A program made the position numbers and the translations under genes. Under the pieces are notes generated by a model. That model searched no databases. It was not told where the DNA came from and worked only from the letters and a program-made list of their open reading frames with translations. A stretch of DNA of 63,112 bases, counting the filler, from Hyphochytrium catenoides (Eukaryota > Protista > Hyphochytriomycota): the NCBI GenBank assembly GCA_900088475.1. It is 6 parts of 6 records of this genome, joined end to end, with 100 filler letters (N's around TTAATTAATTAA, not from the genome) between each part and the next. Parts side by side here need not be neighbours in the genome. Positions count along the whole stretch, not along the records: positions 20,361 to 48,359 come from FLMG01002625.1; 5 more parts are not named here. One strand, written 5' to 3'. Below are positions 20,771 to 45,200 of the stretch, piece by piece (positions within the stretch are counted from its first letter, which is position 1; each line of letters begins with the position of its first letter).

Positions 20771-21304
20771 GAGAGAAAGAAACGGAGGGAAGAGGCAGGG
20801 AAATAGAGTGAATGTATTTGTATATATAGAGCACAGCGAGTGTACTGGGAAACTTGCTAGCTAAATGGCTCAAGTGAGGAAGAAAGCGAGGCCAGAACCG
20901 AAGGCCTTGCGGCTGCCTGGTCTTGGAGCTAGCGGCCTGCCATGGAGTCTTTGAAGGTGCTCTGCTGGTTTTGAGGAAGTGAGGAGCGCGACCCGTTGCT
21001 TGGTCCACGGCAAAGTAAAGAACAGCGTACGAAGCTCCCGCTTGGCATAAAGACCAAATCGCCTCCGAAGAGAGAACTGAAGCCTATGAGCAGGAGGTTG
21101 AAGGGCGGTTTATAGGTCACTATCGCGCAGCAGAAGGACTGCGAGCCTTTAACAAAGAGAGAATGAGCGGCCAGTGTCAGCGGCCACGTCGTACGCTGAA
21201 GCCCTTCTAAGAGAGGGCATGTGGAAAGGGAGCAAACGCGAGGAAGAGGCAAAGTAGAAGGACAGATATCGAAAGCGAGGAAGGAAAGTGAAAGTCAAGG
21301 AAGG

Positions 21305-24300
21305 ATGTCGTCCGTTCCCGGAGGCCGTCGTGTGACAGCCACGGGGTCCATGCAGATCCTCAAGGTGAACTCTGTGGGCTCCAAATTGTCCATTCCTCTC
21401 TTGGTCCCGTCCTCGAGTAAGTCAACTGAAGGCCGTCTCAAGGCGATACAGCGCCGAGGAACGAGAGAAAACATTGCTCGGGATGTAGGGCGCCTTAACG
21501 CGGCAGGGCGGCGGCTTAGCGTGGACAGGATGCACATGGACCCTATCGTTGCGCTAGCAGAGAACTGTGTGAGCCTGATCTTGGAGAAGCTTAAACAACA
21601 CGCCACGCAGCTGCGGTACCAGCAACTCTTCAAGGACATTGTGGCCCAAGGAGAACTGGAAGGCTACACATTTCCTTCTGTTACTGAAGAGACCCGGCAG
21701 CCAGGGAAGCAGTTACCAGCGGACCAATACGTGGTCAAAGCGGGAGAGGTGCGGGACACACTGGAAAGCGTCACAAGGGCCCTAGCCGAGCGCTGCGGAC
21801 CTTCAGCGGTGGAATGCTTCTTTGGCGGCACGAAGAGAGTAGAGAGAGCGGAAGCAAAGGCTGACAGACGCTATGGCGGAGACCTTTCTGGAGTCTTAGA
21901 CTACGCCCGAACGTCTATTGTGTTAAAGGACTTAGCCAGCATCCGTGCGTGTGTCCAGGCCGCAGACGATTGGGCTCGACAGGACCCTTCCTGTCCTTTT
22001 ACCATTGCGCGTATAAAGTCACTCTTCTCAACGGAAGAGGAGGCTCTACCCGGAGGATACCGAGATGTGAAACTCAATCTAAAGATTCAAGAGCACATCT
22101 GTGAGGTGCAGCTGCATCTGCAGCCAATGTGGGCCGTGGCTGGTCAGGACGGCTATGGGCTCTACCAGGTCGTTGCCGGACAGGACGAAGATGGGAACCC
22201 GATCCTCCTGACCAGTGGCCTTGAGATCTTAGAGTCGAGTCTCATGACAGAGGAGACTCTGATGATGATGATGCAGATTGCCGCCCGCCGTGCTGAAGAA
22301 CCCACCATCCTTATCCCTGCAATTCTAGCGAGACAAGGAAAGGCAAAGGCTGCGATGGAAGAGTATCAGAAGGCGGTGGCTCACTATGAGGCCAAAGGAC
22401 AGCCAGACCATCCCACGGTGACGTGGTCTAAGAGAGGCATCACGGAGATCCTGCTTACACAGAATGAGAGCGAGGAGGCTGTGAAGCACGCGGCAACCTG
22501 CGTTGAACGTAGCTCCAAGCTGTATGGTCCGGAGCATCCAGAGACTACGTCCGACACCTTCCTCCTCGCCTCAGCAAATGCTAAGAACGCCAAGTTTGCG
22601 GAAGCTGAGAGGTGCTATCGCCAGGTGCTAGAGAGGCGCAGGGAGGTGTTGGGCGAGGAAGATGCTAAGACGCAAGAAGTAGAGTGCGAGCTAGCCGCGC
22701 TATTGGCACAGAAAAAGGAGCGGTCGGAAGAGGCAGAGACACTTTTTCGCAAGGTCCTCGCCAGCAGGGAAGATCGCCTGGGATCACGTCACGTCCTCAC
22801 TTTGGAGGCTGCAGGTCAGGTGGCCTTTATTTGCTCGACAAGGGGGAAGTATGCAGAGGCAGAGCCCATGTACACGCGCTGTATGGAGGGCTTTGAGGAG
22901 GCTTATGGTTCCTCGCACCCTCTGTACCTCACCTCCACCCTTAACCTGGCGAAGCTTCTGCAAGAACTTCGACGCTACGCGGAGGCCGCAAAGCTGTTTG
23001 AAAAAGTATTAGAGAGCTGTCGCACGCTCTACGGCCCAACGCACGAAGAGACTCTGATAGCGCAGAAGTGTCTTGGTATGTCACTGTACCGCTCCAAGCG
23101 GTATGAAGAGGCCGAGAAGCTCCTTCAAGGCACCCTCGAGGCTCGAGAGAAGTCATTAGGGAAAGATGATGAGCGTACGATCAGCACAATGGTAAGCCTC
23201 GGCAGCGTTCTAATCGACGCAGGCAAAGTCGATGAAGGCATCCAGCACCTCCGTCAGGCATTGGATCTCTATGCCCAAACCTTAGGCGAAGATAGCGCCG
23301 CTGTAGTGGATGTCCTACAACTTCTGGCAGGGACCCTGGAAGCGAACGGAGAGAGAGAACAAGCCTTAAAGTACTTCAAGAGAGCGCTTAATGCGGCAGA
23401 AAATGTCTCTGGGAAGGAATCTCATGACATCATTACCTTCAGCTCGGCGGTAGGACATTGCCTGACCTCTCTTGGCCGGTCTCGAGAGGCAGAGCCTCAT
23501 CTCCGGCGCGCGCTGGACCTCTCCTCTCGACTGCAAGGTAATCGCCACAAGGAGACACTATCGATCGAGAACGAGCTTGCGTCTGTTCTGGGTGCAGAGC
23601 TGAAGGTGGACGAAGCAATTGACCTTTATAAGGAGACGCTAGCGGGACGCTCAGAAGTCTGTGGGCCGAAAGACTTAGAAACGCTTTCCACAGCGTACAA
23701 CCTCGCCATTCTTTTGCATAAGACGGAGAAGCTGAAGGAAGCTGAGTCTCTGTACCAGCAAGCCATAACTGGATATGAAGAGATCCTCGGCCCCAAGCAC
23801 CCTCACACGCTAGATGCCGCTAATAACCTGGCATCTCTCTTTGCCGTCCAAGAAAACTATGCTGCCGCAGAGCCACTCTTCCGTCAAGCAGTGGCAGGAA
23901 GAGAAGAACAGCTTGGGAGCACTGACTCCTCAACTCTAGCCAGCTTCCACAGTCTCGGAAGCATGCTCTACAGGCAAGAGAAGTACAGCGAGGCAGTGCC
24001 CATACTGAAGAAGGGCTTTGACGGGCGAAAGCAGGTGCTGGGACAGGAAAACAGTCAGTTTCTCTCTACAATGTACTATTATGCCATGTCCATGGCGAGA
24101 CTGGGGGGTAAAGAGGCAGAGGCGACGGCTCTCTGCCGCGAATGCGTGGCCCTCATGCGTAAGAACCCTGCCACGATGAATGAAGACAGGGTGTTGGAAC
24201 TGGAAGAAGCCGCGCAGGAGCTGACGGCCAAGCTAAAGTGGCAACGCATCACGAGCATTTTTTGCTGCGCCGGTTCTCAGGCGCGGGTCAGCGTAGAGAC

Positions 24301-24310
24301 CGGTGCCTAA
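21305..24310 (+). CDS. RelA/SpoT-synthetase-like nucleotidyltransferase domain fused to about 15 kinesin-light-chain-type (42-aa) TPR repeats; single exon
   Basis: Uninterrupted ORF, first ATG at 21305. NTase motifs TKRVERAEAK..YGGD..V.DYARTSIV..IKSLF..GGYRDVKLN..ICEVQLH lie at about 21830-22120. From about 22320 there are repeats of A..L..G.Y.EAE.LY..AL..RE..LG..HP.TL with a 42-aa period. Confidence 0.85.
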   Translation: MSSVPGGRRVTATGSMQILKVNSVGSKLSIPLLVPSSSKSTEGRLKAIQRRGTRENIARDVGRLNAAGRRLSVDRMHMDPIVALAENCVSLILEKLKQHATQLRYQQLFKDIVAQGELEGYTFPSVTEETRQPGKQLPADQYVVKAGEVRDTLESVTRALAERCGPSAVECFFGGTKRVERAEAKADRRYGGDLSGVLDYARTSIVLKDLASIRACVQAADDWARQDPSCPFTIARIKSLFSTEEEALPGGYRDVKLNLKIQEHICEVQLHLQPMWAVAGQDGYGLYQVVAGQDEDGNPILLTSGLEILESSLMTEETLMMMMQIAARRAEEPTILIPAILARQGKAKAAMEEYQKAVAHYEAKGQPDHPTVTWSKRGITEILLTQNESEEAVKHAATCVERSSKLYGPEHPETTSDTFLLASANAKNAKFAEAERCYRQVLERRREVLGEEDAKTQEVECELAALLAQKKERSEEAETLFRKVLASREDRLGSRHVLTLEAAGQVAFICSTRGKYAEAEPMYTRCMEGFEEAYGSSHPLYLTSTLNLAKLLQELRRYAEAAKLFEKVLESCRTLYGPTHEETLIAQKCLGMSLYRSKRYEEAEKLLQGTLEAREKSLGKDDERTISTMVSLGSVLIDAGKVDEGIQHLRQALDLYAQTLGEDSAAVVDVLQLLAGTLEANGEREQALKYFKRALNAAENVSGKESHDIITFSSAVGHCLTSLGRSREAEPHLRRALDLSSRLQGNRHKETLSIENELASVLGAELKVDEAIDLYKETLAGRSEVCGPKDLETLSTAYNLAILLHKTEKLKEAESLYQQAITGYEEILGPKHPHTLDAANNLASLFAVQENYAAAEPLFRQAVAGREEQLGSTDSSTLASFHSLGSMLYRQEKYSEAVPILKKGFDGRKQVLGQENSQFLSTMYYYAMSMARLGGKEAEATALCRECVALMRKNPATMNEDRVLELEEAAQELTAKLKWQRITSIFCCAGSQARVSVETGA

Positions 24311-29202: not shown

Positions 29203-32200
29203 ATGTACGTCTTTCTAGCGGCATCGGCTATTCTGACTAGCGAGCCCGCTAGGGCTGCGCTGGAAGTTACCTTTGCCGAGCTTTCTGTACTGTTTGCCGA
29301 GCATACCTTCGCGGTCTTGCTGCTGGTAGCTGCTGCATCAGCCCTGTGTACCTATGTCTCCATGAGGTCGATGCTGATCACTTCCAACGCCAAGGAGAAG
29401 GGAGCAACAGGATGGGATGGACTGCCTGATGCGGAGAGCGTTCGAGTTGAGACTGCCGCTCTTTCGCCAACCGAAAAGAATGGTCGGTATGCGCAAAGTA
29501 CTAAGGGGAGACAGAGGCCGCAAAATGTCGGAATTCTGGCCATTGAGACGTACTTTCCATCTCAGTACGTGGCGCAGGAGGAGCTGGAAAAGGCAAACAG
29601 CGTTTCCAGCGGGAAGTATACCATAGGACTTGGGCAAGAAGCCATGGCATTCGTATCAGACAGAGAAGATATCAACTCCATCTGTCTCACGGCAGTGCAT
29701 AACCTGCTAGACAAGTATAACATCTCACCACTCTCCATCGGCCGCCTGGAAGTCGGGACGGAGTCGCTCGTTGATAAGAGCAAGTCAACCAAGACAGTGC
29801 TCATGGAACTCTTTCGAGAGAGCGGCAACACGGACGTCGAGGGCGTTACCTCTATCAACGCTTGTTATGGAGGCACTGCGGCGCTGTTGAACTCTGTTGC
29901 GTGGGTGGAAAGCAGCAGCTGGTGAGCAGAAGCCCTTTCTGTCTAGTTGGCTTCTCTCTTGGTTGACTTCTCTCTTACACTGATCATTCCTTTTCTCTTT
30001 ATCCAGGGACGGGCGTTATGCACTAGTTGTGGCTGGCGATATTGCTGTGTATGCTAAGGGACCAGCAAGGCCTACTGGAGGCTGTGGAGCCGTGGCGATG
30101 CTTGTAGGACCGAATGCTCCTATTGTTCTTGAGCCAGGGCTACGAACCACCCACGCTGCTCATGTCTGGGACTTCTTTAAGCCTGACATGAACTCTGAGT
30201 ACCCAGTAGTGGACGGACAGTTCTCGAACGCTTGCTATCTCACCTCGCTGGATGACTGCTACTCGCGCTTTGCTGCAAAGCATGAAGATCGTGGGTTGGA
30301 CGGCAAACGCTTCAAGATTTCAGACTATGACTTCGCTGTGTTCCATTCCCCGTATAACAAGCTGGTCCAGAAGTCCTTTGCGAGGGTAAGTCTCGAGGCG
30401 GCTTGCCTCTGACGTCTCTTCCACTCCTATCCCTAGGTCTCTCTCTGTCTCGATCTATATCTTGCTTCTTTGTTTAAAGCATTTGCTTAGCCCATCGGGA
30501 CACTGGCGGTTGTGCTGCATGAATGTCTTTCAAATGCAAGAGAAACAAGTGGGGACGATAAGGGTTGAAGTCCATTCTACACTGCTTCCCCCTTCTTCAT
30601 CCTCCACGCTTGAACTGCGCTTTTCCTCCGTCTACCTAAGCTTCTTCTTGTCAACTGAAGAAGCCCTTAGGCGAGCGCAGACAGCTTATTCTTCGTAGCG
30701 CCGCTGCAGCTTAGTCTTCTGGCATTGTAATGCCTCCACTCTGACCGCTTACCGCCTTCATCCGCGTTTCTTTTGCAGATTCTTTTCAACGACTTCCTGC
30801 GCGATCCCACCAACCCTGCATATGCTGGCCTTGAGAGGTTCTTGACGATGCCTCGTGAGAAGACGTACAATGATCGCGAGCTGGACCTGGAGCTACGGAA
30901 GCTGTCCACGGACTTGTACAGGAGGATGGTAGTGCCTTCCGTGAAGCTAAGCCAGCAAGTGGGCAATTGTTATACAGCGTCTGTCTTCAACAACCTTGTC
31001 TGCCTCATCGACGCTATGAAAGAGCAACTGCTGGGCAAGAGAATCGTCATGTTCTNNNNNNNNNNNNNNNNNNNTTCGTGATCGCGTCCATGACCGGAAT
31101 GACTATGCGTCGACGGAGCCAGTGGAGCTCCTCTTCCCAGGAACCTACTACCTTGTGAAGGTCTCTAAGAACTGGCATCGAATCTACAACCGAAAGCCGC
31201 TGACAGACCGGAAGCTCACCCTAGACCAGCTTCCACCTCATTCTCTTCCTGCCGCAGTTGACTTTTCTCACGAAGCAATCCCGGAGTTGGGGGTGAGTGT
31301 GCCGAGGCAATCGCAGGTCCGAACTGTCATCGCTGCAACTTCACTAGGCCTCCCTGGTGGCCAGCGAGTGTTTGCCCCTGAGAACCTTGATCGTCTTTTA
31401 AATGGGGACAACGCCATTGGCCATGTGACGACGGCTGAACAACAGCAAATGATTGAGATGTCGATTGTTCAGCTGAAGAAGACAAAGCAAGGAGCGCTCC
31501 GCTTGCCAGTCACTTCACATGAGCAGTGCATCAAGCTCGCAGGCCTCCTAGGACAATTCTCTCTAGACCAGGACTATGGCATCCCTAGGAATGTCGTGTT
31601 GGCCATGGAGGAGCCCTCTCAACTGGCGGTGGCTGCTGGTTTGGAAGCCATGAAGTCAGCTGGTCTGGTGGCTGGGGACATTGTGAACGGCTGGGGCAAC
31701 TGGCGGCTCCCTGACGGACTTAGGGACAGCACAGGCATCATCTTTGCCACGTCTTTCCCTTTACTCCAGACGGGTGTCAAGGAGGTAAAGCGCTTCATGG
31801 CCAAAGGGAGGCCAATGGAGAGTGACCGCCTGGTCGAGACGCTCAAGGAGCGGGCGCTGTTGGCGGGCTTCTCTGAGGACTCGGCAGAACTGTCCTTGCT
31901 TGAACAGCTGCGTTCTCTGCCTTCAGAGGAGGAGGATGCCTTTGAGTTTGATCGCAAGTTCCTCTTCCGGGTCCTAGTCCTTGCAAATGCACAGCTGGCG
32001 CAGATCACTGGCGCGCGTGGTCCTAATTCGCAGATCAACGCTGCTTGCAGTGGCACCACGCAGGCGCTTGGGATGGCACAGGACTGGCTACGCTCTGGCC
32101 GTGCTGAAAGGGTTGTTGTCATTGCGGCGGACGACGCTTCCTGTGCCGACCTCTTTCCTTGGATTGGTAGCGGTTTCCGCGCTCTGGGTGCCTCCTGTCT

Positions 32201-32867
32201 AGCGGGAGATGTTACTGATGGTGCGCTGCCATTTGATAAGAGGAGAAGCGGGATGATCCTAGGTGCAGGAGCCGTGGGCGTAGTTTTGGAGAGAGAGAGC
32301 GCTTTCAAGCAACGTATCAACGGTCTGTCTGCGACCACTGCAGCTGCTCTGGCGGGACCCAAGTGCGAGCTGGTGGCCTCTCGCTTCACCAACTCCTCCT
32401 ACCATGGAGCCGCAATGGACAAGGATCACATTGCCATGGAGCTTGAGGCGTTTCTGAAAGAACTAAAGGAGCGGCAGGGAATCACTAAGGAGATGCTGGC
32501 GACCGATGGCGTGTACTTCAGCCATGAGACATGCACCAACGCCGCTCCGCAGACTTCCTGCGCTTTCTCTGAAGTGTTTGCCCTGCACCAGGTATTTGGC
32601 GAGCCACTTGTGAGTCAACTGCTGATCGCCAACACGAAGGGCTTCACTGGCCATCCGATGTCCGTCTCTTTTGAGGACATCGCAGCGATTGAGGGACTAG
32701 TCCGCGGCCTGCTTCCGGCAGTAGTAAACTTTAAGGAACATGATGAGAATTTGGGGGTCAAGTTGAACCTCTGGCGTGGCGGTCCTTGCAAGAAGAAGTA
32801 TGCGCTGCGGTTTGCTGCAGGGTTTGGCAGCCAGTGCGCCTTCACATTCTACCGCGTCCAGGGCTAA
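29203..32867 (+). CDS. Fusion protein: hydrophobic N-terminus + HMG-CoA synthase + C-terminal beta-ketoacyl synthase (KS) domain
   Basis: HMGS exons 29203-29921, 30007-30385 and 30779- carry [16 protein letters not shown] (Glu), NACYGGT (Cys), ARPTGG, FHSPY (His) and GNCYTAS. After the N gap 31056-31074, one open frame carries the HMGS C-terminus ([12 protein letters not shown]) and continues into a KS: [12 protein letters not shown] (Cys), [22 protein letters not shown] (His), NTKGFTGH (His), AGFGSQ. Confidence 0.9.
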
Positions 32868-33300
32868 GGGGCTCCATCGCGGGTAAGATCATTCTTGCGA
32901 GACATACTCAGCACAGCTGAGGAGGTAAGCTCGTGCGCCCATAGTGGGCCCCGTGTCAGCGCTGTACCTATGGTCTAATAATAGCTAATCAAACGCAAGG
33001 GCTTCACGCACACATGTTCCTCTATTCACATTTACGCCTCTTCATGTCTCCTTGTTGACCACCCTACCCTGTGAGTGGACCTCTCGCTTATCACAAGGTC
33101 CTGTCGCCGTTCTGTGGCCAGAATGAGAGTACACTCCACTCGCCGCTCTTTTTGTCCTAGTGCCGCTGCCTCCAAGATAAGCCTTCCACCCTTCGCCATA
33201 CGTTCCTCTCTGCAAACCATTCTTTTACTTCTATCTTCCTCTCTCTCTAAGGAGCTAAAGCTCCAAAGGTCATCCTTGGGAATAAATAGTGTTGCTGCTG

Positions 33301-38647: not shown

Positions 38648-39296
38648 GAAGTTAAGGGAGCACAGGATAAGATAGAGCCCGAGGCTTGGAACCAGATGGG
38701 CAGCTAAGGCGATGGAACACTGGTCGCGCTCAGCCTCTGAAGAGTCCTTTCAGCCATCCCCCAGGTCCTGCTAGTCATAAGGATTAGGAATAATGACACA
38801 TTATCAACCACAATTTGCAATTTCTTCTGTAATATCATGAATGGACACCCGGAATGAATGTATGTAACGCCTTTGGTCTGGGTGCTGACGGAACGACCAC
38901 GCCCGGAGATCCTGGTGAGCTGCAGCCCGAGCCGAAGGCTGCAGGAGACAGCGTAAGGGCTGGTGCCCGTCCAATGCTCGGCACTAACAGCGTCTGCGAG
39001 CATCTCCGAGAGGTTTTGAAGAGCTAGTGGATCACGATAGAGACAGAACTAAGATAGGTGGGCGTCACGAGGAAAGCAGGCGACAATCAGGAGAGCGCTC
39101 TACCATGAGCCTGCCACTGGTCGCTGCGGTTTATCTCAGGTGCTGCTGGGGCGACATGTAAGAATGGCCCGATTGACACGTTCGAGGGGTAGGAATATCC
39201 TAAACAATCGCCGTAGAATGTTCCAGCTTGGTCGGTGGGTTGCGGGGTCGGGAGATTGGTAGTGCACAGCTAGCCCGACAGCTCCCAGCTAGAATC

Positions 39297-42200
39297 ATGC
39301 CGAGCGCGGAGGGTTTTGAGGAGGACCTGCCTCCAATGAGCTCAGGCGTGGATCCCTCCGTTGACTCTGCAAAGGTCTCTTTACGGTTGGACCATGCGGT
39401 TGGAATGCTGGACGATATGCCAGACTCTGCGGCTTTCATCGATGAACGCCGCGTAGTCTTTGCTGTAGGTAAACGCGCTGGGATCATTGATGTTGACTCA
39501 AAGATCACCCGCTGGCTTGAAACAGTGGGCACTTCCTCGAGCACCAGCAAGGGTGTGACGACACACAGCATCAGTGTGCAGCTCTGTGCAGTTAGACTTT
39601 GCCCAAAGCACCGCTATGTAGTCCTTGCCGAGCTGATTCAGGCTTACAAGGAGAAGAAGAACGGTCGAGGCGCAGGAGACTCTGGTGGGTCTTCGTCTTC
39701 CCTTTCTCTTGGTGACAGCGTGCTCAAGGGCTCCACTGGCGCTCTGCTGGAGGCTCAGGGTTCAGGGCAGTTAGACGTCTCTGGGAGGGAGGACTACTTT
39801 CTACTTTCATTCTTTGACCTCGGCAACCTGGCCACGCAATTTGAGCTCAAGTCGCCCCTGTTGCCCGTCAAGCGCTTGATTCAGCGAGGACACAAGGACA
39901 CTTCGGTCAGGGGACCGCTGAGCTCCATTGCCTTTAGCAGCGATAGCAAATTTCTTGTCACTCTTAGCAGCCCAAGCGATAACCTTCTCTGCATCTGGGA
40001 GTGGGGCCGCAGCCGCTTAGTTTGCGCTCATTTGTTGAACACTAAAATCCAGCGCGTCACCTTCAATCCTAAGGATAAAACCCAGATCGCCACGAGTGGG
40101 CCCCAGTCTTTGCAGGTCAGAGAGAATGCCTAAGACCTCTACTCTTGATCTGTTGTTCCGTTTCCATTGCACTCCCTCTCTCGCGTGCTGCTCGTCTCCA
40201 GTGCTAGCCCCTTATTGCATCTCATGCCGTCTACGGCAGCTCGCTGAGCATATGCTTGGCCTCCCTGTAACCTAACTCGCATTAGTTTGCCTGTCGGCTT
40301 CACCTCTTGTCTCGATGCGACCGCCTTTTACACTGCTCCGTCTATTTCCCCATCACCGTAGCTCTGGAGAGTGGCAGAAAGTTCGCTACGGCCGTTCCCG
40401 CCCTTTCGGCGGCTGCGGAGTGGAGACTCATACACAGACCAGAAATGGACGAGGGATGGCGTGATGGTGGCGTTAACCGAAGGTGGCGATGCCGTACTGA
40501 TGCAGGGCAGCGACCTGCTGCAGAGGTTCGAGAAGGTTCTAGGGAATGACACACCTGAGAACTTAGTGGTAAGACCATCTAAAGTTCCTCCTTCTCGTGG
40601 ATCGACCCTTTGCATCTCCTTTTGACTCGATCGGTAGCCACATACCTTCTTGCGCTTTGGCTCTCTGACCTTTGTACCCCAGCAGCCTCTCCCCGCTGCC
40701 ACTCGAACACTATGAGCTTCCTCTCACATACTACATCTCCGTCGTCCCAGCCTACCGACCAGGAGCTAATCATTTTCGGGGCTACGGGCACAATCGCCAT
40801 TCTCAGAAAGGAAAAGAGCGTTGAGCCGGTAAGAGTCCAACCTCTATACAGTGATCTATGAGGAAATGAGAGGTAGTAGGCTCCTAAGATAGCTGAACGG
40901 AGGAAAAGCGAGGATGAAAACAAAGAGAGCTGGGGAGAGAGACAGGGAGGGCTGACCACAAACCCGCAGTAGACGCTTTGCGACAAACCTGACAGTCTCC
41001 TCCGTTACCTTCGGTCCTAGATTTCCTATAAGGTGGTCAACACCTTGGCCCTCAACCATCGCGCTCGAATCTACTCAGCTACCATCTGCCCCCGACAAGA
41101 GACTCTTCTTCTTCTCTTCAAGGGACAGGCTGGCGTTGTATTGCTCTCTGCTCTCAACTCTATTCCCCCAGGAGACAAAGACAAGCCACTCGCCTTCCTT
41201 AGTCCTCTGGACCCTTGGCACCAAGCACCCGTCAGCTGTCTGTCTGTTTCCACCTGTAAAAGTCTGCTAGCTACTTGCACCAGTAGGGACGATGATACGA
41301 CCGTTAGAGTATGGAACTATCGGAAAAGAAGGCTCATCAGCGCCAGTGTGTTCAAGTCCAGACTCCCCGGCGTTAGCGACCCTTTCGGTCTGAAGAAAGG
41401 GCTAGAAGGAGCAGACAGAAAAGGAGAACGAAGCTCGTCGAGAAGAGAGCAGGACAACAACGGCGGTCCCTCCATCAGGCGTATTCCTCTGTCTGTTTCT
41501 TTCCATCCTGACGGGTACAAACTCCTCATCGGCTTCGCAGACGGCCTTCGACTCTACCACGTGTTAGCTGGCTCCACCCTCAAATCTCAAGCGCAGGCTT
41601 GGAGCAGCACCGATATCGAAGCGTCAACCCTCTCGCATCCTGCAATAACTCTGGAAGAGGACGAGCAAGGTGAGGCAGAGGGCATGGGGGCTGGACAGTA
41701 TGGCGAGGGAGGCCCTATCGCAGACGGAAAGGCGACCGCAAGAGACAAGGAAGGTCTCTCTTTAGCTTTGGAAGTCTCGAACAACTCTGTCCATTACGTT
41801 TCATTCTCTCCAGGCGGAAGCCTCTTCGTCACCCTAGAAACTGCGCCATCCTCTTTGTCAGCAGCCTCCTCTGGTCTTGACTCTCCAAAGAAGGCGGAGG
41901 GCCGTCCAACTCGTGCTTTTATCTATTCCTTTTTCGGAGCAGGGTGTGGGAGCAGCCCACGCCGTATGATGGAGCTCGTAGGACACCGAAGCGCTCTTTG
42001 TTGCCTATGCTGGCGTGGGATGGACCAAGGAGTCGTTGGTGCTGACAGAGCAGGCCGCATGTATGACTGGAGGATCGCTAGTGGGCTCGATGGACATGGC
42101 ACAGACGCCAGCACCCAAGGCGAAGCTCCAGGCCGGGAGGAGGATGACACCTTATGGGCCTTAGAAAGCGATAAAGGAGAGAGCAGCGTGTGTTCAAAGT

Positions 42201-45200
42201 CCTCTGTGCCCAAAGTCCGGCACAGTCAGGAGACCTACGAGAAGAACCTTCTCTTTTCAAGCTTGCAGGCGGCCTCAGATTCAGTTCTCGCTGCAGGAGA
42301 GAAGATCCAACCCATTTTGGCAAACTATGGCCATCGTCCAGGAACCGGCCCTTCCTCTCCTACCGCAGGCAGCCTCGGTCCTAGCTCTCCAACAGGCCAA
42401 AGAAGGAGGCAAAGCCTCATACCGGTCTCGGAGGGGAGGAGTTCCTCTCTCTTACTCAGCTGGACGAAGAACTTGGCCCAGCGAAGTGGTCTCTTCGTCG
42501 TTCCTGGGCCTCCCTTAAGCTCGTCCATTACAAGGATTCTGGTCAGCGATCAACAGCACCAAACACTTTTTGCTGCCACCAATGCCGGCAGTGTCCTACT
42601 ATTTGACTATCCACTGAAGATCGACACGAAACTAGGTGCGTTTATCTCTCTTCTCCCCTCGCGCTCTCCTTCTCTCTCTCTGTCTCTCTCTCTCCTTTTC
42701 TTATCAACCTGCCTCTCTTTCTTTTTCTCTTGCTCGTATCGTACCTCTCATAGTCTATCTCATAGTCTCCGTCTATCCACTGTCTGGCATCTTGTTCCTT
42801 GCTAAAGATACACTTTCCTCTTTCCAAACCTTCGGCTGTCTACTAAGCTCGTGCGTTTTCTCTACACCTCTAGGGCACTCCTTTCTCAGCCATTACTTCT
42901 CTTCTCACCTCGTTTCATGCTTTAAAAAGAACCTTTGTCTCACTCCTCCGATGTCCTGTTCGTTGTCCCTTGTCGGCTTCCTGCTGCTTCCTTCGCTTTC
43001 GCTGGCAGAGTTGACTTTGGATGGCGTGATAAAGCTTCATCCCAGGCAACAAATCATGCTCCACTCCCTTCCTATAACAGCGCTATCGCTATCCGGAGAC
43101 GGATCCTTTCTTCTATCCACTGGAGAGGATGGAGCAATATTCTGCTGTGAGATTGTCCGCCGGAGGGAAAAAGAGAGACACAGCGGAATTCAGAGAGAAA
43201 CAGACCGGGAAGAAAGGAAAGAACGCCTTCAGAGGCTCGCACAAGCTGAGGAAGATCGGCTGTGTCTCATCAACTCTGAGAGCTTCTCATCTGAGCGAGG
43301 GCAGCTGGCGCAACTTGCCCAGGAGTTAGCAGAATTGCGGTCATTGAGAGAATATGAGCTTCAGAGCCTAGTGCAGTCGCATCGCCTGGAGAAGGCAGAG
43401 ATGGAGGTCTCCTTTCTTGAGCAAATAAAGGAGAAGGACTTTCAAATAAGGTTAGGAAACCGGCAGGAGAGGGAGGACGAGAAAGAACTTGAAGAAGAGA
43501 GGAAGACGTGGGAAAGACAGAGAGATATGGCAGGATGTGACCTGGCACTGGGATGCGTCTCCTCAATGCTTTTCTCTTTCCCTTCCGGGTCCTCTCCCCT
43601 CTCTCTCACCCGAGTCTGTCTCTACTTTGTGACTTCAGCTAATGGTTATGTTCTTATGTTTCCTCTTTAGCGTTCTAGAGGAAAATCAGAAGCAGCTCAA
43701 AGCTAAGGCTGCGGAGGATCTTCAGCGGATGGAGGCCTCTCGACACGAGATGATTGGAGAGATGGAGAAGAGATTCGAGGCAGAGAAAACAAGGATCGCT
43801 CACGATCTAAAGAGAGAGCGAGAGCGGGCAGACGATATTCTCGTTCTGTCACAGGAGAAAGAGGAGGCTCTTGTTCTGGCTCGTAAGGAGGAAGAAGAGA
43901 AGCACAAGAAAGAAGTCCAGCAGCTAAAGCATCTCACAGTCCTGGAGAGGGAGAGTCTTGAAGCGTACGAAGACCATCTCTGTTTCTCCTCTTTCCTCTT
44001 TCTCTTCCTTCTCCCCTTGCCCTCTTCTTGAACACTGTCCTACAGCCCCTACTTCTCTTCCCAGCTCTTATGTCCTCTGTCAGCTCCATCGCTATTGTCT
44101 CCCTTAACGCTGACCATCTCTTCGCTTACTGTCTCTCACCCTCGGACCTTCAGATACGTGCTGGATATGAAGCGTGCAGCTGACAAGGCGTCTGAGCAGG
44201 AGGAAGAAGAGGCGAACGTTGTGATAGCTAGGCTGAAGGCTGAGATTCTGCAACAGAAGGAAGAGAGCCATAAGAAGGTAGGTAGTCTCTCCTCATTTCT
44301 GCCCCCCTTCTTGCTCTTTCGCTCTTTAGAGAGGGTAAAGTGCCAGCTCTCTCCTGGCTCCTCTTCCCTTCGCGCTTCGTGTGAGACACATATAAGTGTT
44401 CTGTGACATCGACGCCGTTCCTTACGCTAGGAGAACTCTTCCTGATTGCTGCTCACAGAGATTCGCTGTTTAATTGTCTAAAGTTCTTTTCACCTCTCTT
44501 TTCCGTCGTAGTCCCTCCTCTTTGCTTTTCTCTCTCTCTTCTCTTCTCTTCTCCCTCCTGTGCTGCTGTCACTCAGTTGCTCTTTGTGGGCACCTTCCCT
44601 GTTCTTGCTCTTCTTAATCATCTGTCCCGTTATCCACAGTTTCTGCACCAGGAGTATGAGAACACGCTGCTTCAGGATGCCGTGAGAGTGATGAAAGGGG
44701 AGCTTAAAACCAAAGAGGATGAGCTGAAGCGAGCAGCAATGTCTAAGGAGGCAGCTGAGGCTCAGAGGAGAGGACTAGAAGAGCAGCTCAACCTCATTCG
44801 CGAGGAGATGCAGGCTTTAGAGAGGAAGGATGAGCTTTTGAGAGAGCATGTTTGGAAAGAAAAGCAGTCTCGGGAAAGATTGGAGAAAGAGAGGAACATT
44901 TTGAACCATAAGGTAACGTTGCAGGCCCCTTCCAGGGCCATCTTCCTTCTGGGCACTTTATAAACTTCTAAGGTCCATTTAAAAGTCTCACAGCAAAGCG
45001 AGAGCATTGTCTTTCTCAGAGCCACATGTCCACTGCAATACGAACACGCCTCTACGAAAGCCTCTAAACGTTCTCACTGAGTGTGTCGCTCTCTTCGATT
45101 CCTTGCTGTGTCTCTGTCTGTCTGTCGCTCTCTCTTTTTCTGTTTTGCTTTCACTCCCTCGATCATCCTTTTCACTTTCTGACCTCATCGTTCATAGCTT

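Follow-up and report, generated by a model that had tools for sequence, protein, structure and literature searches.

Hyphochytrium catenoides, a hyphochytrid protist, carries a gene in which HMG-CoA synthase (HMGS) is joined in one reading frame to a FabF-like ketosynthase (KS), predicted to be a complete decarboxylating condensing enzyme. The gene lies on the plus strand at positions 29203-32867 of the window, by which we mean the whole stretch of 63,112 nucleotides, filler included, that was analysed. The window consists of six joined parts of the assembly GCA_900088475.1, and the gene falls in the part from FLMG01002625.1. It is a single gene with at least three exons, HMGS preceding KS. 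We are nearly certain that this fusion gene is real and that it is a member of a stramenopile HMGS-KS family. For the fuller statement, that stramenopiles possess a bifunctional HMGS-KS gene in which the KS supplies acetoacetyl units, we see slightly less than an even chance.

The fusion junction and the assembly gap

The gene contains an assembly gap, and an earlier note, made from this DNA alone, had claimed that the HMGS tail motif LFPGTYYL runs without stop or intron into the KS and that the gap does not create the fusion. Both claims were borne out. No stop interrupts the frame that opens at 31077 before the TAA at 32865-7, and its last sense codon ends at 32864. The HMGS tail makes up the initial 40 residues, and a linker and then the KS follow. 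The HMGS-KS junction is thus located wholly in uninterrupted sequence 3' of the gap, and the fusion is independent of the gap. When contigs were compared with the assembly, no indels were reported within 31075-32867. One further contig, X3, the kind of which is uncertain, covers 31119-31307 and 31646-31920.

The gap, which the earlier note had asked to close, is bridged by an independent Logan contig. Record 5 of X1 (2462 nt) aligns with 30453-31055 and 31075-32708; where the assembly shows 19 N, the contig has 225 letters. Together with one nucleotide before and two after them (1 + 225 + 2 nt), these letters make 76 codons, in frame; of the 225 letters, the first 30 were read. The end of an X2 contig running past 31055 reads SYGSGMMATM, which corresponds to the HMGS 'FSYGSG' motif. 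Positions 362-417 of the HMGS model TIGR01833, which are missing from the assembled gene, fit the location of the gap, indicating that the gap holds HMGS coding sequence. The X1 and X2 contigs may derive from the same sample as the assembly of this DNA.

An artefact of assembly or gene modelling, in which two adjacent genes were merged, would give a similar picture. The N gap inside the gene and the coverage of the H. catenoides gene by contigs only, with no RNA run, speak for such an artefact. However, the junction is unbroken after the gap, independent contigs span both the junction, free of indels, and the gap, with the frame kept, and the same fusion recurs in dozens of genomes and in one diatom transcript. 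We therefore reject the artefact, to which we attach a negligible probability.

The HMGS half

All coding pieces of the HMGS half were matched by HMGS profiles, namely Pfam PF01154 and PF08540 and NCBIfam TIGR01833 (HMG-CoA-S_euk). The last of these was covered at positions 2-135, 137-265 and 266-361 and, after the gap, 418-457, with a summed score of ~508 bits against a cutoff of 286. Glu183 (29749-51), Cys221 (29863-5), His353 (30344-6) and Asn429 (30965-7) all reside in their usual motifs, those around the triad being LEVGTES for Glu183, NACYGG for Cys221 and FHSPYN for His353. The triad motifs are common to the homologues; in alignment A2, Cys136 and His270 of the homologue P0002 are nearly invariant and its Glu102 is at least 90% conserved. 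By these profile and motif matches the HMGS half is a complete, ordinary HMG-CoA synthase of the eukaryotic type with an intact Glu/Cys/His triad, as had been described before. In oomycete surveys, the fusion protein is annotated as the HMGS of the mevalonate pathway (PMC5289490).

The KS half

Residues of the KS are numbered by their position in the post-gap frame that starts at 31077. In this numbering, the predicted catalytic set consists of Cys324 (32046-8), His483 (32523-5), Thr485 (32529-31), Thr487 (32535-7), Lys521 (32637-9), His526 (32652-4) and Phe583 of the GFG loop (32823-5), and the coordinates given earlier for the Cys (32046-48) and the two His (32523-25 and 32652-54) are exact. 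HMMER alignments placed Cys324, His483, Lys521 and His526 on the catalytic positions of solved FabF chains. The Cys, His, Thr, Thr, Lys, His and GFG Phe were conserved in essentially all of the 54 KS sequences aligned, the exceptions being one change of Thr to Ser and one truncated C-terminus, and the active-site Cys was invariant (54/54). The same set was invariant in a smaller alignment of 24 sequences. Thus, the claim that this KS keeps its active-site Cys and a catalytically complete set holds, and the pattern of conservation suggests that strong constraint has kept the KS half a complete decarboxylating condensing enzyme.

AlphaFold2 modelling of the post-gap frame gave a thiolase-fold domain beginning at about residue 83 (nt 31323), with a mean pLDDT of 81.7 and a pTM of 0.82. 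The linker (about residues 41-82) was disordered in the model, with pLDDT below 50 at residues 59-78, and was gappy in the alignment. The best Foldseek matches of the KS were FabF/KAS II proteins, with a TM of ~0.85 by target and 19-21% identity. The KS is ~100 residues longer than FabF; its N-terminal part is extended, and it has a helical insert that varies in length.

The KS is a divergent FabF-like domain. TIGR03150 scored 92 bits against a cutoff of 493.75, below the threshold of the FabF equivalog; the Pfam match to PF00109 was partial, and the Pfam scan found no PF02801 above threshold in the KS. FabH-family models aligned with only ~36-45 residues around the KS Cys. In profile scans of the coding pieces of the gene, no acyl carrier protein (ACP), AT or PPT domain was detected in the fusion protein, and neither a thiolase-family nor a DUF35 profile scored above threshold. 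Throughout the family, an S-F/Y-P motif that would lie close to the acyl pocket has an invariant aromatic residue, a candidate equivalent of FabF Ile108; this segment falls outside the profile-to-PDB alignment, and no argument is built on it.

Distribution of the fusion in stramenopiles

When the post-gap frame was used as the query of a word-indexed search, 420 matches were obtained, of which the best 120 all had E values below 1e-143 and 42-56% identity, far more than chance would give. The full-length homologues have 950-1090 residues and carry PF01154, PF08540 and PF00109 in the same domain order. Members were found in oomycetes (Phytophthora, Nothophytophthora, Hyaloperonospora, Pythium, Lagenidium, Aphanomyces and Thraustotheca), in diatoms (Fragilaria, Entomoneis, Cylindrotheca and Bacillariaceae) and in other stramenopiles (the chrysophyte Chromulina and Phaeothamnion). 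Many matches of ~640 residues are last-exon fragments that retain the HMGS tail. In Cylindrotheca, a single MMETSP transcript (P0289) carries the coding sequence of the entire 1073-residue fusion. Where the open reading frames (ORFs) of shorter Cylindrotheca isoforms break, they do so within the N-terminal part of the KS rather than at the domain junction, a pattern resembling intron retention.

The fusion architecture is already known, both from annotation and as a published domain combination, and the H. catenoides copy is a further, fairly divergent member. NCBI and UniProt annotate the fusion in Phytophthora, Aphanomyces, Lagenidium, Hyaloperonospora, Fragilaria and Cylindrotheca, where family members are labelled as HMG-CoA synthase or as KS3-domain protein. 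P. tricornutum 16649 and P. sojae Ps128154 are further family members. Morris et al. tabulated the pair of HMGS and KS domains for P. sojae, T. pseudonana and P. tricornutum in 2009 and placed the fusion among the multifunctional proteins older than the diatom-oomycete split (PMC2705460). The fusion is older than the separation of oomycetes and ochrophytes. Since the fusion is widespread in stramenopiles, annotated, and published in 2009, the novelty implied by the earlier note was overstated. Its suggestion that similar fusions may exist unannotated in other stramenopiles stands as to their presence in oomycetes, diatoms and other groups, and fails as to their being unannotated. In the literature on the HMGS-KS fusion we found the 2009 table entry and no paper that gives the KS half a function.

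Known stramenopile fusions have the same HMGS-linker-KS order, the same conserved catalytic residues and a KS of the same clade as the H. catenoides protein. They differ from it by a KS-region identity of 42-58%, and the H. catenoides copy stands on a long branch on the oomycete side. The N-terminal hydrophobic extension of the latter is common to Aphanomyces and is not seen in the diatom or Phytophthora copies.

Phylogeny and origin of the KS

In a quick maximum-likelihood tree with SH-aLRT supports, the HMGS-fused KS sequences formed one clade (SH-aLRT 100, 33 rows) containing the H. catenoides copy, oomycetes, diatoms and a chrysophyte. The H. catenoides KS occupied its own long branch adjoining the oomycete group (SH-aLRT 91), inside no named genus.

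With only the KS as query, an exhaustive HMMER search gave 453 cluster representatives below 1e-30. The closest non-fused relatives were the internal second KS domains of megasynthases, with 36-44% identity over the full ~510 residues. These megasynthases have 1.6-3.9 thousand residues and the layout [NMO]-KS-AT-KS-ACP(n)-KR-DH-PPT, and two of them are NCBI records labelled as Heimdallarchaeota and Asgard-group metagenome-assembled genomes (e.g. P0135, P0139). Their second KS has the extension, the insert and the invariant residues in common with the KS studied here; it is embedded with AT, ACP, KR, DH and PPT domains, whereas the present KS is without these and is joined to HMGS. Sequence comparison thus indicates that the KS shares family descent with the internal second KS of KS-AT-KS-ACP-KR-DH-PPT megasynthases, which is a new observation.

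The sister clade of the HMGS-fused KS comprises Cyanophora and further contigs (P0154 at L003:8001-11618, P0144, P0187, P0136 and, from Cyanophora, P0148). In these proteins, a methyltransferase-like region of 300-560 residues stands in front of the same KS type; a hidden HMGS was looked for in the sister-clade proteins and was not found, this region being there instead. The contigs look eukaryotic and represent a second, different fusion of this KS type.

Some features of the megasynthase loci were also recorded. P0140 (L001:10001-19828), P0135 and P0139 are megasynthases of 2.9-3.6 thousand residues with the layout [NMO]-KS-AT-KS-ACP-KR-DH-PPT. One megasynthase gene is directly downstream of genes for biotin carboxylase, BCCP and carboxyltransferase (acetyl-CoA carboxylase), on a contig of 1.1 Mb that has an Arf-family GTPase gene nearby.

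Possible function of the fused KS

The earlier note had suggested that decarboxylative condensation by the KS feeds HMGS, which is a reasonable idea. We propose, as a tentative reading short of an even chance, that the KS supplies an acetoacetyl thioester to HMGS. This reading is favoured because the full set of decarboxylating KS residues is conserved, the protein has no ACP, AT or PPT domain, and the HMGS half is ordinary. Fused enzymes often catalyse neighbouring steps. In the proposed scheme, the KS would load an acetyl group on Cys324, and His483 and His526 would decarboxylate malonyl-CoA, so that acetoacetyl-CoA would be released. In its simplest form both the acetyl primer and the malonyl extender would be CoA esters; a malonyl group on a separate carrier would be a less likely variant. 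The tethered HMGS would then join acetoacetyl-CoA to acetyl-CoA to give HMG-CoA, and the otherwise unfavourable first step of the mevalonate pathway would become irreversible. The scheme would resemble the combination of NphT7 with HMGS in Streptomyces, with a Cys-His-His KS replacing a Cys-His-Asn KAS III. We give a somewhat lower likelihood to the more specific proposal that the KS is a FabF-type, malonyl-CoA-dependent acetoacetyl-CoA synthase, which would make the fusion an irreversible, HMGS-tethered entry to the mevalonate pathway and a third independent solution of the thiolase problem, next to NphT7 and the archaeal thiolase-HMGS-DUF35 complex, with a KS captured from a megasynthase lineage now found in Asgard-labelled genomes.

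Several points weigh against acetoacetyl supply. FabF-type enzymes are generally poor users of CoA thioesters. The nearest relatives of the KS sit beside ACP domains in megasynthases, which suggests an ancestral preference for ACP-bound substrates. The full-length model of P0002 had a pLDDT of 86.6 and a pTM of only 0.56, with a disordered linker; a fixed HMGS-KS interface was sought in this model and none was supported, so that the prediction gives no fixed channel linking one active site to the other. In oomycetes that bear the fusion, acetyl-CoA C-acetyltransferases are annotated as well (SPRG_00258 and PITG_01783; PMC5289490), and the thiolase route could therefore still operate there. The literature yielded neither biochemical nor genetic results for the KS half, and the H. 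catenoides gene is covered by contigs only and by no RNA-labelled run.

The KS half might instead serve a separate ACP in an unrelated lipid or polyketide-like pathway, the fusion to HMGS being kept for co-expression, co-localisation or regulation. We consider this unlikely, though it has the best claim among the alternatives to acetoacetyl supply, because in the closest non-fused relatives, the megasynthase domains, an ACP immediately follows the KS, the partner of the same KS in the sister clade is a methyltransferase-like region and not HMGS, the P0002 model predicts no fixed domain interface, and oomycetes have thiolases. Against a separate ACP pathway, every stramenopile group sampled has kept the pairing with HMGS, which goes back beyond the split of oomycetes and ochrophytes, and the protein is without an ACP, AT or PPT domain and has no known partner. 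That the KS acts mainly as a malonyl decarboxylase giving an acetyl unit to HMGS, as in polyketide beta-branching cassettes, is improbable. The His, His, Thr and Thr residues of decarboxylation are conserved, and bacterial HMGS cassettes do pair HMGS with a decarboxylase of the KS family (background in PMC11522927); these KS-like decarboxylases, however, have no active-site Cys, whereas the Cys is present in 54 of 54 members here, and we reject a decarboxylase of the cassette type on this ground. Moreover, cytosolic HMGS uses free and abundant acetyl-CoA, so that a dedicated decarboxylase would be without evident benefit. Still less credible, and in our view very unlikely, is the alternative of the earlier note, in which the two domains together would yield longer 3-hydroxy-3-alkylglutaryl or branched-acyl compounds instead of HMG-CoA. 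A KS could in principle elongate acyl groups beyond acetyl, but we found nothing in support of such products: the HMGS half is an ordinary eukaryotic HMGS that strongly matches the equivalog model, and oomycete surveys annotate the protein as the HMGS of the mevalonate pathway.

Comparison with other condensing systems

The KS has the thiolase fold, the Cys-His-His triad, the Lys and the GFG loop in common with FabF/KAS II, and differs from these enzymes in its ~20% identity, its fusion to HMGS and the lack of a known ACP partner. NphT7 is a FabH-type enzyme of ~330 residues with a Cys-His-Asn triad. The Streptomyces enzyme, a KAS III, performs the reaction proposed here, the formation of acetoacetyl-CoA from acetyl-CoA and malonyl-CoA for HMGS, so that the two would be functionally analogous only. 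An NphT7 homologue was rejected, since the present KS is of the FabF type with a Cys-His-His triad, FabH models align only in part, and the best structural matches are FabF proteins.

The archaeal thiolase-HMGS-DUF35 complex and a related complex of Streptococcus (PMC12960953) likewise couple an acetoacetyl-forming enzyme to HMGS around unfavourable thermodynamics. These complexes are non-covalent and employ a true thiolase and a DUF35 scaffold, whereas the H. catenoides protein is a covalent fusion to a predicted decarboxylating KS. The thiolase-HMGS-DUF35 type was rejected because neither a thiolase nor a DUF35 match was obtained in the coding pieces of the gene.

Gene model and neighbouring genes

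The features of the gene are listed in Table 1. The start of exon 1 is the first ATG, with an in-frame stop 4 codons upstream. N-terminal hydrophobic stretches like that of H. catenoides were also seen in Aphanomyces P0097 and P0072 and in P0123 and P0124, and were not present in the diatom or Phytophthora copies compared. Judged by its hydropathy, this stretch, which precedes the HMGS core, may serve as a membrane anchor and would then put the enzyme at a membrane. For intron 1, an X5 contig from a relative (~92% alike) skips exactly the 85 letters. Removal of intron 2 gives a junction after KSFAR that matches the homologue P0002 (FARVLFNDFLRNP); among the contigs placed on the gene, no spliced read was seen for intron 2, and one X5 contig continues from exon 2 into the intron.

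Table 1. Features of the H. catenoides HMGS-KS gene, in window positions
Feature	Position	Strand	Description	Support
Exon 1	29203..29921	+	ATG start, ~105-residue N-terminal extension, most of HMGS N domain	PF01154 E 1.5e-63; TIGR01833 228 bits
Hydrophobic stretch	29308..29364	+	residues 36-54 (19 residues)	Kyte-Doolittle mean 2.13
Intron 1	29922..30006	+	85 nt, GT..AG	sole stop-free junction; restores SSSW-DGRY motif
Exon 2	30007..30385	+	HMGS N domain end and C domain start	PF01154, PF08540; TIGR01833 positions 137-265
Intron 2	30386..30778	+	393 nt, GT..AG	homology alone
Exon 3 to gap	30779..31055	+	HMGS C domain	PF08540 positions 90-186; TIGR01833 positions 266-361
Assembly gap	31056..31074	.	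19 N	bridging contig: 225 nt
HMGS C-terminal tail	31075..31196	+	LFPGTYYL at 31131-31154	PF08540 positions 241-280; TIGR01833 418-457
Inter-domain linker	31197..31322	+	~42 residues	length and sequence differ among species
KS domain	31323..32864	+	514 residues, FabF-like	AF2, Foldseek, PDB FabF alignment
Stop codon TAA	32865..32867	+		frame translation

The X1 and X2 contigs present two variants of about equal depth, with several substitutions and small indels at 29919-30073 and 30402-30422 and, 3' of the gene, a 14-nt insertion after 33020. These differences around introns 1 and 2 and at 33020 look like allelic or strain variation. An antisense ORF of 257 residues, rich in Ser, Ala and Arg, occupies 31619-32392 on the minus strand within the KS coding region; most likely it merely reflects which codons the sense strand uses.

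Elsewhere in the window, an ORF at 21221-24310 on the plus strand encodes 1029 residues dense in TPR_12 and TPR_10 repeats (E 7e-106), similar to kinesin light chain or NPHP3. Several plus-strand ORFs at 39228-43670 gave weak matches to WD40 or EML-type beta-propellers and probably represent the exons of a WD-repeat gene or of two such genes.

Implications

Should the KS use malonyl-CoA to form acetoacetyl-CoA, the mevalonate pathway would not begin as textbooks have it in a major group of eukaryotes, one that includes the diatoms and the oomycete crop pathogens. Isoprenoid flux would then be linked to acetyl-CoA carboxylase, and the KS would be a lineage-specific enzyme that is absent from plants and animals. 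A fused, irreversible module of two steps would also be useful for isoprenoid engineering.

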